A stretch of 63,963 nt of DNA, filler included, from Intoshia linei (Eukaryota; Animalia; Orthonectida): assembly GCA_001642005.1 (NCBI GenBank). It is 9 parts of 9 records of this genome, joined end to end, with 100 filler letters (N's around TTAATTAATTAA, not from the genome) between each part and the next. Parts side by side here need not be neighbours in the genome. Positions count along the whole stretch, not along the records: positions 38,797 to 44,704 come from LWCA01001742.1; 8 more parts are not named here. One strand, given 5' to 3'. Positions 38,556 through 44,704 of this stretch are shown in pieces; position 1 is the first letter of the stretch; each line of letters begins with the position of its first letter. Made by a program: the position numbers and the translations under genes. The notes under the pieces are model-generated. The model made no database searches. It saw nothing but the letters and a program-made list of their open reading frames with translations, and was not told where the DNA came from.

Positions 38556-39049
38556 GTGTCAGTATTTTAAATTTTTTTAGGTTAGTATTTTTTTTACTGA
38601 CAATTTAATATTATTACTGTCAGTTTAATATTTTTACTGATGATTTAATTTTTTACTGACAAAATATTATTTTATAAAATGTGTTTATTTCTATATNNNN
38701 NNNNNNNNNNNNNNNNNNNNNNNNNNNNNNNNNNNNNNNNTTAATTAATTAANNNNNNNNNNNNNNNNNNNNNNNNNNNNNNNNNNNNNNNNNNNNCAAA
38801 AGAACGTAAAATTGGAGCGGCAAATTTTAGGTACATCAAATTAAATGAGTTAAAATATAAATTTATAAAATTGACGTCAAAAATATGAATATAAATTATT
38901 TTTTTAAAAAGTAAATTAATTACTAAGACAATAATTCATCCGATTTAAATAATAAACTTTTATAAAATCTAGCGGTTGTCTATAGTTTTGCTAGAATCTA
39001 GCAATTTTTGGCAACTCTGTCGGTAAGTCACATCATAATGCCTCTGATA

Positions 39050-40650
39050 CTAAATACAGTTTGTAAAGATTTATTATGCATTAATATAGACAATTCTTCC
39101 TGATATTTGATATTTACATTTAATAAGTCCACCAAAAAAGGTTGTGTCAACCACAATGGAAAATGCATAAGTTAAAACGTATATTAAAATCATTTTTCAT
39201 TATTTTTAAATGATTTAATATAGTTTTTTACTAATTCTGTAACAGGATTTATTTAACCAAAAGAAATGACAATAATTATAATTATTGGATGAAATATTTT
39301 CTATATAAACATCTAATAGTGACATAAATCCAAATATTTGATTTTTTGATTATACCAGAGTCTTATCTCTTTCTAGTAGATTCTCATTCACATGTCAATG
39401 TATTTAATTTTTTAAATATATCAGTTAAATAGCTCATATGTTTTTCCATCAGTAGTCAGAAGGTCTAATTCAGGTTTATTTTCTAAAAATTGACTGATAA
39501 AACCAAATAACTCCATAAACCCCTTTAAAAAATTCCCTTTGATAGCCATCTAATATCAGTGTATAACAATAATTGCACATGTTCTTCATTATTATCAATA
39601 CAGAATTTTTTGAAAAGGCGTTCATATTCAGCATTTCTTAGAATTTATGCAACTTATTATCGAATGAAGAATTCTATGTAAAATTGGACATAACTTTTTA
39701 GCAATTAAATTTTCTCTATGTATTATATAATGCACAATCAACATATTGGGATTTTGATCTTTAATTATATTCAAGCAACCATTTTTTCACCCCATCATAA
39801 CGGGTGACCCATCTGCTGCACATGAAGTTATGTTTTGGTATATTTTTTTCATTCAAATAATCATTTAACTTCTTAAATATATCACCTGAAGTTATGGTCG
39901 TATCCAAAGATTTACAAAATAACATTTCTTCTTTGAATTGTTCTTGGTCAATATATCTCACATAAACCATTAAAAGAGCTTCACTGTCACGAAAAGTTGA
40001 CTCATCCATTTGTAATGAAAATTTCCTCGTTTTTAATTTATCAATGAATTGTTCTGCAATGCACTTGATTATATCATCAATTCTATTACTGATGATGTTG
40101 TTACTCAATGGCATTTGTTCAACAACATTTTAAGTTTTAACAAATGATGAAATTGCAGGCTCTATTAATTATTACATATTATATTATTAATTTTTCAGCT
40201 ATTGTATGACTCTTTCCATTTTTTGATATCCACAGAGCAATTTCATAACTAGATTTAAGCATTCGATTAATTTGTACAAATTTTACTTTCAACGATTTAA
40301 AATAGTCTATTGAATTTTCATTGTTAGAATGTTTCGATTCCAAATGAGAGAGAAGACGACCCGGTTTTATTGACTCATTGGATAANCAAATTTTACTTTC
40401 AACGATTTAAAATAGTCTATTGAATTTTCATTGTTAGAATGTCGATTTCGATTCCAAATGAGAGAGAAGACGACCCGGTTTTATTGACTCATTGGATAAT
40501 GTTTTTTCACATAACAGACAAAAATGTAAGTGTTTATCAATAATACAAGCTATGAAACCATAGTTCAAAAATTTATCTGAATATTGGCGAACCCTTGTTT
40601 TATTGGTGTACTCATTATAGTTATATAAATTAATTTCTCTAAAATACAAT
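39050..40650 (-). mobile_element. decayed hAT Buster/SCAND3-like transposase
   Basis: RQYSDKFLNYGF, CLLCEKTLSNESIKP, MPLSNN, FSLQMDESTF, EEMLFC, IRWLSKG; many disablements. Confidence 0.9.
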
Positions 40651-41804
40651 AAAAAAAATTAAAAATTAATATTAACCTGTATAATGAAAATAATGTAAAA
40701 TAAAATGCAAACTTTTTTTAGTTTTTTTAGACAAACATATAAACGTAAGTGTTATATTTTTGTACTAAACTTTAATCTAACGTGGCACTAATATTTCTTA
40801 GAAACACAAAAACTAAATGAATGTAAAACTTTAAAAAAACAATTTGGTGATGCGATTATTTTAATTTGTTAGAGAGAATAATCTTAAAAGTAAAGCATAA
40901 AAATTGAGCATTACAAAAATGTCAAGTCAAGAATATTAGAGGTTGTTAAGGAAATCGTTTTGATCGTTTTATAAATTTTTTATGGCATATATTTCATTTT
41001 AGGTAGGCTGAACATATTTTTGTTGTACTAAAAGTAGTACTTTTATTGCTTAGAAACAAAATATGTATTTGATTAATTTTTCATTAGAAATGTAATGATA
41101 ATATCATTATACTAAACTTTAACCAAAACAGTTACCATTGTAAATATTGTATACATTTATTATCGTAATCAGAAACATAATTTGTATTTCACTGATTAAA
41201 CATCTTCATTTTCACTACAAGAAAAATGAAAATTTAAGTTAAATTTCAATTTATAAGTTTATTTAGTTTTGAAAGGTACGACTTTGGAACAGTGCCATAA
41301 AGTAATACTTCTGGTCGAACTATTTTAAGGTGTGTTTCGCTGTGCATAAAATCTGACTCAGCTTTATTTACATTTAAATTAATTGTTAAATGTTAATTGA
41401 AATTTTAAACGTTTGTTAAAATTAAATACGAATTAAACCTAAATGTTAAATGATATTAATACTATCAATACATGTAGTTAATTAGAATACTAACATGTAA
41501 ATAAAATATTTAATGAACGAACTGAAAGAAATATCCAAGACATTAAAATACACTGGGAAAATAATGTAAATATTTTAAACGGTAGTAAAGTAACATTGCT
41601 ACCTAGTGAACATACAAACGTTTGAAATGTACAATTGCCATGCCGTTCAATGTATATTTATTTTATTGAATTTGAATGTGAATAAAAACATTATACAACT
41701 GCTAAGTTTATCTATAGAAATACTCAATTTTTGGACGAATCAAATACATTACTTGATTCAAATTAAAGATTCTAGTTTTATAACACTATCGGCTTACATT
41801 AATT

Positions 41805-43663
41805 ATGAGCAATTTATTAAATAAACCAGGAAATATACTCGACGACAGCGGAAATTTAGCTGTGAACCCTAATGATTGGTTTGACGAATTTGAAGAATAC
41901 TGGACACTTTTATGCATTACAAATAACAAATGGGACTCTGCGTCTAAAAAAATATTAATGAAGCATCTTTTAGGACAAAAGGCTAAGGAAAGGCTGAAAA
42001 TAAACGGAATTGATTTAAACTGTGTGAGTATTGATTGCATCAAGAAGAATGTTTTATCGTGGAAGAGTACCAACATATCCTTAAATAGATTGAATTTCTT
42101 GAATGCCATGCGCAAGTGTGACGAATCCATGAGTGTGTTTATTGATCGACTCGTTTTTCTTGCTAAAGGGTGTAATTACAAATCATATACAAGGGACATG
42201 ATTCGTGATAAATCCATTCACGGGTGTAATAATGAAAAATTACAAAATTTCCTCGTTCAAAAACAAAATTTAAATTTGTACGAAGTAGTTCAGGTAGCAA
42301 AAACGTATATGAATAAACCTCAAAAAATTATTAAAATATTACGACCAGTACACCAGAAACGAATAACGGTAGCGACGACCCCAGTGATTAGAAATTTGGA
42401 ATCTGATAAACTCTGTGAAAAAAAACCAGATCCTTATTTGTCCAATTTAATTTCATCTAATGGTATAATAATCAATTCAACCAATCAAAAAAAATTTAAA
42501 TTTCATATGAAAACAAATAACAAATCAAGTATATCTTTTGCTAGAGATGTGAAATCTGCTGTAAGCGATATACCACATTCTAATACACTAACCTGCAGTC
42601 AAAAACCAAAATTGGTAGACATGGAAAACACTGATGAAACTTATTCAGAAGATACTGATGAATTAACCTCGGATTCAAATATTGAAATCAACACACCTAA
42701 GGACATGTCAAACTTCAAATCAATTAAAGTGTATGAAAAGTGGCACAGAAAGTTTCTTATTTTTATTAGTGAAAACAAATTACCCGAAACTTTGGATAGT
42801 ATAATTAAATATTTTATCGAAATATCAAAAATATATTCAACTTCAACTCTTTGGCAAGCCTATAGTTGCCTCAATAAACATTACGGAATGAATAAGTCAT
42901 GGGCTTCATTTAATGATTGTATTATTCTCAAAAACATTATTAGAAATAGTCCTAATGAATCGTTTGTTAAAAAACAGTCTAGAATTTTGACTAAAGATCA
43001 AATCATTCAATTTATTTCAATTTCATCTGAACATCCAAAATTTTTGGTTAGAAAAGCAATAGCTATTATTGGTTATTATGGCGGTTTAAGTTGCACAGAT
43101 TTGACACACTTGACATTTTCCGATGTTATCGTGAAATCAAAGAATATTAAAATATTTATTCGTAAAAGAAATTTTGATTCCAGCGATAATGTAAATTTTT
43201 ACTTCTTAATTCCTAAATCTGAAATGTATGCCCAATATTGCCCTTTTGATATTTTAAAACAATATATTAATGCTAGTAGTAGAAAAACTACTCGATTTTT
43301 TCAAAATTATAATATCAAGACAAACGATTTTGTTGGTCAGCCTATGGGTAAAAATACAGTCTCGTCTATTCCAAAGTTTATTGCAACAAGCTTGAATTTA
43401 GAAAATCCTGAAATGTACACCGGGTATTGCTTTAAAAGATCAGCAGCATGTGGCTATTTTGATGAGGGTTTATATTTTTGTTGTATGTTTAGATTAAATT
43501 TAATTATTGTTTAGATGGCATGACAGTTTCGTTAAAGAGGAAATATCATAATGATATTTATAAATCAACTAAAAGGACGAAAAATTATGTTGCAGACACG
43601 ATAGAACAAGATTTGAAGGTTTATAATTCTCTGAATGTAAAGATGGTTGATGAAAATCAATAA
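41805..43663 (+). CDS. Gag/capsid-like plus Crypton-type tyrosine-recombinase-like fusion protein (~603 aa; predicted intron 43468-43514)
   Basis: N-terminal F..AMRKCDESMSVFIDRLVFLAKGCNY..DMIRD..IHGCN (retrotransposon Gag-like); C-terminal STLW..YSCL, ILTKDQI, QPMGKNTV..IPKFIA..LNL.NPEMYTGYCFKRSAA (Crypton-like YR); exon 2 continues LKR..KS..NYVAD. Confidence 0.75.
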
Positions 43664-44469
43664 ATTTGATGTAATGTTCTAAAGTTGTTTATATTATTAT
43701 AATATATTAAATTTTTATTATAATGTGTAGTTTTAAAGTTTTATTTTAATTTTTGGTCAGATATACATGTAATTAATAATTATTATTAACCAATTTTGGT
43801 ATTACCTACTGATTTATAATATATCACTATCGTCCTATTCGAGATTTGAATATATCCTATTATAATAACTATATATTAAGGGTGTATCTTAACATTTTTT
43901 ATGTGTGGCCGCACTTGGAAGCATTTAACATTTTTTGGTGCATAACAAAATCATAATGTTTATATTTGTTGGATGTTTACTGAAAATCTTGACTATAGCA
44001 TCAGTTTTTGCACGGAAAAACTGGAAATTTAAGAAAAAAAGTTGATTCGGTAAAAAAATTGTATTGAAAAAGAAGGTAAGAAAAACAGCTATTGTAGTAT
44101 GTTAGTAGTATTATAGTACCTTTTCTAGGTGATAGACTACAGCTCGTTTCAAAAATAACGCAACATAATTAAAAGCTCTGTAATAATTTTTACAATTATT
44201 TTTGTGCTCACAGATTAAATTTGACATTAGTACAAATGATATTACAATAATATTTAATAATTTGAATAATCACAAAATATTTTAATTAAAAAATGTTATA
44301 GCAAAAAAACTAAATTTTAAATAATAAATGTTGTTTCAAAAATAACGCAACTTTTTAATTATCATCCACTGTTACGCTTTATTTGATATTAATTGTAATT
44401 ATTTTTTTTATTTAATGATCACATGATATTTTTGTACATAACAATTATACAATATTTAATTTTTAGCTT

Positions 44470-44704
44470 TATGACAGATAGAAAAACTCATTTATATATA
44501 GGGAACATTCAAAAGGGGATTTATGATATGATTAAACAATAACAAATTGTCTGAAATAGCGTCAACCTTTAATGTTAATAAATCGACCATTCATAGAACC
44601 TGGAAAAAATAAAATAAGCCCGACAAAAGAGGTAGGCCAACTAAAATAATACTAAAATAACACCTACCCTTGAACGATCGATAATAAGAAATGCATCTAA
44701 TTCT
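44470..44704 (+). mobile_element. possible Tc1/mariner N-terminal HTH remnant
   Basis: Fragments IASTFNVNKSTIHRTWKK and KRGRPTK; truncated by the linker. Confidence 0.4.

Follow-up and report, generated by a model that had tools for sequence, protein, structure and literature searches.

An intact Intoshia linei gene with a Crypton-type tyrosine recombinase unit that has lost five of six active-site residues and carries an orphan N-terminal extension

Gene structure at the locus

The window analyzed here is a 63,963-nucleotide stretch made up of nine parts of the genome of the orthonectid Intoshia linei (GCA_001642005.1), in which positions 38797-44704 are one whole contig of 5,908 bp with a GC content of 26% (LWCA01001742.1). 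On its + strand this contig carries a gene whose product is the public 'hypothetical protein A3Q56_07695 [Intoshia linei]', a protein of 603 residues that bears the UniRef name 'Tyr recombinase domain-containing protein' and is designated P0001 below. A previous reading of the window, made from the sequence alone (the sequence-only reading), had proposed that the gene joins a Gag/capsid domain to a catalytically dead tyrosine recombinase (YR) of the Crypton type. Before splicing, the gene appears as a single + strand open reading frame (ORF) at 41805-43514 with 569 codons. Its features, some of them predicted from structural models with a per-residue confidence score (predicted local distance difference test, pLDDT), are as follows:

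41805-43467, + strand: exon 1, holding codons 1-554 and the first base of codon 555; 100% identical to P0001
41862-42314, + strand: N-terminal region, residues ~20-170, predicted to be all-helical; the stretch called 'Gag-like' in the sequence-only reading
42315-42620, + strand: linker, residues ~171-272, predicted to be disordered; rich in Ser, Thr, Lys, and Asn; pLDDT about 31-37
42621-42623, + strand: Met273, at which the ancestral recombinase ORF is likely to have started
42699-42983, + strand: predicted core-binding (SAM-like) N-domain, residues ~299-393, which aligns to the N-domain of Cre; pLDDT >90
42984-43467, + strand: first part of the predicted catalytic-fold domain, residues 394-554, with a weak Phage_integrase match at residues 394-458
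43468-43514, + strand: GT-AG intron of 47 nt, T-rich, spliced in the public gene model and carrying the stop codon that ends the unspliced ORF
43515-43663, + strand: exon 2, holding the remainder of codon 555, residues 556-603, and the TAA stop codon; includes the LKR motif, Y570, and Tyr579

No stop codon interrupts the ORF, where about 48 would be expected at the local composition (0.088 per codon; P about 1e-22). A chance ORF was rejected on these numbers, and the long uninterrupted ORF described from the sequence alone holds up. The remaining five frames of the same stretch contain 22-75 stop codons, and the coding frame itself is closed by a stop codon eight codons before the ATG at 41805 and is stop-rich further upstream. 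The two exons were searched separately, while the full-length searches and the structure prediction used the public record P0001. Exon 1 is 100% identical to residues 1-554 of P0001 and exon 2 is 100% identical to residues 556-603, so that the join of the two exons proposed in the sequence-only reading is the join of the public gene model, including the 47-nt GT-AG intron and the second exon that supplies the LKR motif and the Tyr.

The intron begins with GT at 43468-43469 and ends with AG at 43513-43514. Splicing rebuilds a split Asp codon from the g at 43467 and the at of 43515-43516, after which 48 codons lead to the TAA at 43661-43663. The splice restores both the reading frame and the alignment with the protein family without the gain or loss of any residue, and the phmmer alignment of P0001 to its relative P0002 extends through residue 597; an unspliced product would stop at residue 569 and would not have the LKR...Y segment. 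With a median intron length of 57 bp in I. linei (PMC6543705), the size of the 47-nt intron is, as judged from the sequence, in line with introns of the host. DNA loci of 13 relatives were collected by a contig scan with a 5-sequence alignment, and the tblastn matches of P0001 to four of these (L001, L002, L003, and L005) are unbroken across the intron site, spanning residues 390-594 in L001, 305-594 in L003, and 275-594 in L005. Because the relatives are uninterrupted at this site, the 47 nt appear to be an addition in the I. linei gene.

The cluster of P0001 in the protein library has one member on one 5,908-bp contig, and no close copy is present in the protein libraries searched, with the next relative being 44% identical. 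It is an intact gene, and a single-copy one to the extent that the protein libraries can tell.

The C-terminal recombinase unit and its active site

A phmmer search of P0001 against 1.84 billion representative sequences gave 1,488 matches at E <= 1e-3. The best 150 of these are all restricted to residues ~240-600, and a typical relative is a protein of ~350 residues. The nearest relatives are P0002 (44% identical, E 1e-71) and P0152, both from SRA/ENA assemblies, and the relatives with names come from insects (Solenopsis, Pseudolycoriella, and Ignelater). Two alignments were used for further comparison, one of 25 proteins (P0001 and 24 relatives; alignment A1) and a larger family alignment of 109 (P0001 and 108 relatives). 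A match to the Pfam family Phage_integrase at E <= 0.01 was found in 24 of the 25 proteins of A1, the sole exception being P0001 itself, which scores 13.8-15.6 bits against this family (PF00589) and thereby remains below the cut-off of 27.1. Five of the 25 proteins also match Phage_int_SAM_4, the SAM-like N-domain.

At the level of the family and of the predicted fold, the assignment points to Cre. A profile of the 109 members matches Cre recombinase with an E-value of 3e-15. When AlphaFold2 was run with the 109-sequence alignment, pLDDT exceeded 90 over residues ~290-600, and Cre was the top Foldseek match of the resulting model (E 7e-11; template modeling score of 0.61-0.65 on the target, ~320 columns), covering both the core-binding and the catalytic domains and followed by Xer, integron, and Tn1549 integrases. 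The YR identity first read from the C-terminal half is thus reproduced by structure prediction and Foldseek, with Cre in first place. Based on homology and modeling, residues ~273-603 are a complete Cre-like two-domain tyrosine recombinase unit. In a quick maximum likelihood tree, this unit groups with P0002, P0152, and P0005 (support of 94-96 in the SH-like approximate likelihood ratio test), and P0001 has an end branch of 1.13, roughly three times the length of the 0.36-0.41 seen for its sisters P0002 and P0152.

The active site was compared column by column across the 108 aligned relatives. The family signature R-K-H-R-W-Y reads S-N-Y-K-Y-Y in P0001, such that five of its six residues are lost: S429 (43089-43091) stands where 95% of the relatives have Arg, N456 (43170-43172) where 92% have Lys, Y541 (43425-43427) where 94% have His, K544 (43434-43436) where 97% have Arg, and Y570 (43559-43561), which follows a 3-residue insertion, where 86% have Trp. 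Only Tyr579 (43586-43588), at the position of the nucleophile, is retained, as it is in 86% of the relatives. The Ser in place of the box-I Arg and the Y-x-x-K in place of H-x-x-R had already been recognized in the sequence-only reading; N456 and Y570, as well as the sole retention of Y579, extend that list. All six residues are present in 79 of the 108 relatives, as opposed to one of six in P0001, and among the close relatives and fragments found for P0001 all retain the six. Among columns with a conservation of 90% or more, P0001 has lost 4/4 catalytic residues and 0/8 others (Fisher p 0.002); with the threshold at 80% the losses are 5/6 and 4/22, respectively (Fisher p 0.007). By this comparison, the loss is selective for the active site, and the residues that determine the fold appear to be retained.

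In the chemistry of Cre, XerD/Xer, and Flp, a recombinase that is devoid of both Arg residues, the Lys, and the His performs no strand cleavage or exchange. The positions replaced in P0001 are those that we take to be R173, K201, H289, R292, and W315 in Cre numbering. Since both Arg residues, the Lys, and the His are gone, P0001 is predicted to be unable to cleave or rejoin DNA, a property that we infer by analogy with Cre, XerD, and Flp.

Several features of the relatives were recorded alongside. P0002, P0152, and P0007 carry a Cys-rich N-terminal motif (HFDCDC...PC) ahead of the core-binding domain, which may bind zinc, and they end in the family-wide C-terminal tail NC-x-N-V-x-I-N; P0001 differs from its sisters in having neither the motif nor the tail. 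P0136, a relative of 539 residues, has a BTB/POZ match at residues 20-116 (E 6.5e-4, 0.2 bits under the cut-off) upstream of its recombinase-like part at 271-521, which is the reverse of the order in which this pair occurs in KCTD1 isoform b, and P0136 may be another fusion or domestication. The family profile also matches ~280 residues of a PDB chain of 401 residues (9i5v_14, E 7e-8), whose label, 'Ribosome-associated translation inhibitor RaiA', is at odds with the match. The closest metagenome relative from the contig scan (L001:27-967) is 41-45% identical to P0001 and matches it in two segments that lie in different frames and meet at base 371, which suggests that this copy carries a frameshift.

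The N-terminal extension

Ahead of the conserved KS motif, P0001 has 305 residues, the most of any of the 109 family members, compared to a median of 27 in the relatives. Met273 and the acidic run that follows it align with the start Met and the acidic N-termini of the ~350-residue relatives. From this alignment, the ancestral ORF probably began at Met273, with 272 codons added upstream. The extension of residues 1-272 is unique to P0001 within the family alignment. A run of 272 codons without a stop would arise by chance with a probability of 1.4e-11, and when scored with a codon table derived from the C-terminal half, the N-terminal part reaches -0.01 per codon in frame, compared to -0.3 to -0.5 in the other frames and the flanking DNA. 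This agreement in codon usage holds for the helical part and the linker alike, and on these measures the 272-codon extension is coding-like and would represent real coding sequence.

AlphaFold2 placed helices at residues ~22-39, 45-66, 76-84, 94-120, 144-150, and 158-168 with pLDDT values of 30-70, and it predicted no structure from ~168 to residue ~298; a single-sequence model of residues 1-200 had a mean pLDDT of 46.6, and the full-length model scored 30-60 over this part, so that confidence is low in both. The linker (~171-272) had been described as acidic and of low complexity. Its composition is instead dominated by Ser, Thr, Lys, and Asn, and the acidic character applies to its last ~25 residues only, a stretch that aligns with the N-terminus of the relatives.

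The extension was compared with known proteins by a range of searches. Pfam, queried with the whole protein and five N-terminal fragments, returned only sub-threshold chance matches (YfjL_C, Di19_C, and KH_KRR1) for this part, and a sequence search of the PDB gave no match at E <= 10. No homologue was found in two word-indexed protein searches (with residues 1-210 and with a 200-residue piece; candidates of 110-1,055 residues). A match to the N-terminal part is absent among the best 150 of the 1,488 phmmer matches, meaning that there is none with an E-value below about 2e-15. Scans of metagenome and viral contigs, tblastn against the DNA around the 13 relatives' loci, and phmmer against 158 fetched proteins likewise gave nothing that matches the N-terminal part. 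An internal duplication, in which the extension would be a degenerate second copy of the recombinase, was rejected because phmmer detects no similarity between the N-terminal and C-terminal halves.

The searches were also read specifically for the Gag/capsid fold that had been assigned to residues ~20-170. No Pfam family of Gag, capsid, Arc, PNMA, or SCAN proteins matches at E <= 10 with residues 1-200, 1-272, 20-110, 90-175, or 20-175. With the low-confidence model of the fragment, no Foldseek match in the PDB or BFVD was a capsid, and none reached E < 1. A CCHC zinc knuckle (C-x2-C-x4-H-x4-C), which is common but not universal in retroelement Gag proteins, does not occur in the ORF translation. 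The spacing of the N-terminal motifs is one that we take to resemble the Gag pattern of long terminal repeat (LTR) retrotransposons, a resemblance that serves as a lead. The Gag/capsid assignment therefore finds no counterpart in a Pfam Gag family, a PDB match, a homologue, or a Foldseek capsid, and the ideas of a double domestication and of an oligomerizing capsid are supported by none of the sequence or fold searches, the models used for the latter being of low confidence.

Surroundings, origin, and comparison with known systems

Neither reverse transcriptase (RT) nor RNase H is encoded in the 5,908-bp piece, and it contains no LTR-like or inverted terminal repeats, which extends to the full 5.9 kb what the sequence-only reading had noted for the vicinity of the gene. 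RT and RNase H are also absent beside the YR ORFs of relatives in the four loci with usable flanks (L005, L009, L012, and L013). Upstream of the recombinase ORF in one of these, a 248-residue ORF (L009:229-972, + strand) with a match to the Cementoin repeat (E 1.9e-10) probably encodes a low-complexity repeat protein. At 39421-40649 on the - strand of the I. linei contig, short ORFs in several frames resemble remnants of a hAT/BED-finger transposase. The sole computed support for this resemblance comes from positions 40437-40649, which match zf-BED below threshold (E 0.06), and the hAT identity is putative; a 117-residue ORF at 39761-40114 has no match to a Pfam family or a PDB chain. Within the same region, at 40277-40499, two blocks of 56 and 54 nt that adjoin one another each have an exact copy downstream, at distances of 110 and 114 nt, and from the sequence this is read as a recent ~110-bp tandem duplication inside the decayed transposase remnant. 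Scans of the piece for Rfam families, tRNAs, and tandem repeats returned nothing relevant, and the contig is of non-human origin. An AATAAA that overlaps the TAA stop codon of the gene (43659-43664) could be a poly(A) signal and is unremarkable in DNA of 26% GC. A 114-residue ORF lies antisense over the 5' end of the gene (41786-42130, - strand), with nothing to suggest that it is a gene.

We consider it probable that the I. linei gene reflects a lineage-specific exaptation, or selective retention, of a Crypton-derived recombinase fold as a non-catalytic module. The source would be an animal Crypton-type DNA transposon, from which a single-copy gene was derived. In the course of this conversion the recombinase unit would have kept its fold while the first Arg gave way to Ser, the Lys to Asn, the His to Tyr, the second Arg to Lys, and the Trp to Tyr, leaving only the Tyr; 272 codons, encoding a helical region of ~150 residues and a disordered linker, would have been joined in frame upstream; and a 47-nt spliceosomal intron would have been gained near the 3' end. 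The product would most likely act as a non-catalytic module for binding DNA or protein, as proposed for the Crypton-derived DUF3504 genes, with the N-terminal part supplying an added interaction function. An intact ORF that has an intron of host size and encodes a disabled active site is more in keeping with a non-catalytic protein that has been maintained than with an active transposase, and to this extent the description of a catalytically dead YR given in the sequence-only reading stands, separate from the capsid half to which it had been tied. Selection for a host function, the binding of DNA, and the use of Met1 over Met273 are deduced from these observations, and domestication of the gene is not proven.

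A number of points weigh against this explanation. No orthologue with the same substitutions is present among the best family matches, and Pfam DUF3504 matches neither P0001 (E <= 10) nor any of the 25 proteins of A1 (E <= 0.01). Intoshia evolves fast, and the long branch of P0001 therefore need not signify a changed function. The single-copy status is that seen in the protein libraries, and the splice and the putative use of Met1 rest on the annotation, the GT-AG boundaries, and homology. The contig is short and, with the decayed hAT-like remnant beside the gene, presents a typical repeat neighborhood. The same neighborhood (the remnant lies 1.2 kb upstream) and the same lack of an orthologue among the family matches speak for a rival view, in which the gene is a transposon copy, dead or non-autonomous, that serves the host in no way, its ORF still open through recent inactivation or mobilization in trans, and animal Cryptons do have non-autonomous derivatives (PMC3212892). 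Such a copy strikes us as not very likely. It takes time to replace five separate active-site residues, insert three more residues, add an intron, and extend the ORF by 272 codons, and during that time a neutral ORF of this length in 26% GC DNA would rapidly gather stop codons at about 0.088 per codon; the losses moreover hit catalytic columns and spare structural ones, and the protein libraries contain no second copy or close paralogue, the next relative being 44% identical.

The remaining alternatives concern the N-terminal part. The proposal of the sequence-only reading, namely a Gag/capsid fold at residues ~20-170 fused to a dead recombinase as a double domestication or a chimeric element, would sit on top of the exaptation described above rather than replace it. 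The prediction of an all-helical region with about 6-9 helices, as in capsid domains, the motif spacing, which resembles that of Gag proteins (again a lead and not a test), and the coding character of the 272-codon extension are all compatible with the proposal. It is nevertheless unlikely given the outcome of the searches, in which no Gag/capsid Pfam family was matched at E <= 10 by the whole region or its fragments, no PDB sequence was matched, no homologue emerged from the word-indexed searches, the best 150 phmmer matches, or the metagenome and viral contigs, no capsid and nothing at E < 1 was returned by Foldseek (PDB and BFVD) from the low-confidence model, and no CCHC zinc knuckle was seen. 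The further possibility that a highly diverged domain of the Gag/capsid type makes up the helical region, joined to a dead Crypton recombinase, is likewise quite improbable. DIRS-type elements are the known carriers of both gag and a tyrosine recombinase (PMC3212892), and a deletion derivative of a DIRS/Ngaro-type retrotransposon would bring the two together naturally. This origin was rejected, as RT and RNase H are encoded neither in the piece nor in the DNA next to the YR ORFs of relatives (four loci with usable flanks); the piece has no terminal repeats, the recombinase unit comes from a family of stand-alone proteins of ~350 residues, and the gag identity of the N-terminus is itself putative, all of which makes a DIRS/Ngaro derivative exceedingly improbable. 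A 5' annotation artefact, with the true start at Met273 and the upstream 272 codons untranslated, would agree with the alignment of Met273 and its acidic stretch to the N-termini of the relatives and with the lack of a homologue for the upstream part. It is very unlikely in view of the 272 stop-free codons (chance 1.4e-11), the in-frame codon usage, which matches the C-terminal half while the flanks and the other frames do not, and the closure of the frame eight codons upstream of Met1 with many stops beyond.

The gene itself is already known from the public annotation as a hypothetical protein; it is read here as a catalytically inactive Crypton-derived gene whose partner domain is an orphan. 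Crypton recombinases have been exapted repeatedly in animals and fungi, giving rise to the DUF3504 genes and to yeast Gcr1 and Cbf2/Ndc10 (PMC3212892). The role of the dead recombinase fold in exapted Crypton proteins is still poorly understood. P0001 would be a separate case, young and confined to its lineage, in an animal genome that ranks among the most reduced, and one that differs from the known cases in that the nucleophile Tyr is retained with the rest of the active site gone, an intron was gained, and an N-terminal part was added. It would therefore provide a compact test case for why a non-catalytic recombinase fold is retained. If the N-terminal part were capsid-like, the architecture would be new: P0001 would be the first protein to combine a self-assembling module of the capsid type with a Crypton recombinase that is catalytically dead, either as a host gene assembled from the proteins of two different mobile elements or as the relic of an unknown type of element.

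Several known systems share part of this organization. Cre of phage P1 is the best structural match over both domains of P0001 and the best profile match of its family, with an identity of only 11-13% and with the difference that P0001 is encoded in a eukaryote by an intron-containing gene. Domesticated Gag genes (Arc, PEG10, and PNMA) and the Gag proteins of LTR or DIRS elements resemble P0001 in having a predicted all-helical region of similar size and in the motifs pointed out in the sequence-only reading; for P0001, no match to such a family or fold was obtained, and it lacks a zinc knuckle, a protease, and an RT. In animal Cryptons, the YR is the sole recognizable domain and terminal repeats are absent (Kojima and Jurka 2011, PMC3212892). 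The unit of P0001 resembles CryptonA and CryptonI in being a stand-alone Cre-like YR (~330-350 residues) that lacks terminal repeats and has no RT in its vicinity, and we call it 'Crypton-type' as a description of this YR-only makeup rather than as a placement in a clade. Its animal Crypton-type relatives retain the full active site, whereas P0001 has lost five of the six residues, has a 272-residue N-terminal extension and an intron, and is seen only once in the protein library.

A parallel in kind is provided by the DUF3504 genes (KCTD1, KIAA1958, ZMYM2-4, QRICH1, and WOC), which are YRs without the catalytic tetrad (PMC3212892). As in P0001, a Crypton-type YR fold without catalytic residues is joined in these proteins to other parts of a longer host-type protein. 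The DUF3504 genes have lost the Tyr and the second Arg (PMC3212892), whereas P0001 retains the Tyr and has lost both Arg residues, the Lys, the His, and the Trp; the partner in the DUF3504 proteins is a zinc finger or BTB domain, and that of P0001, a protein with no known conserved orthologue, is an orphan. Because the pattern of lost residues differs and no DUF3504 match is found, the exaptation of P0001 appears to be independent of these genes, and it would be a separate, lineage-specific event of the same kind.

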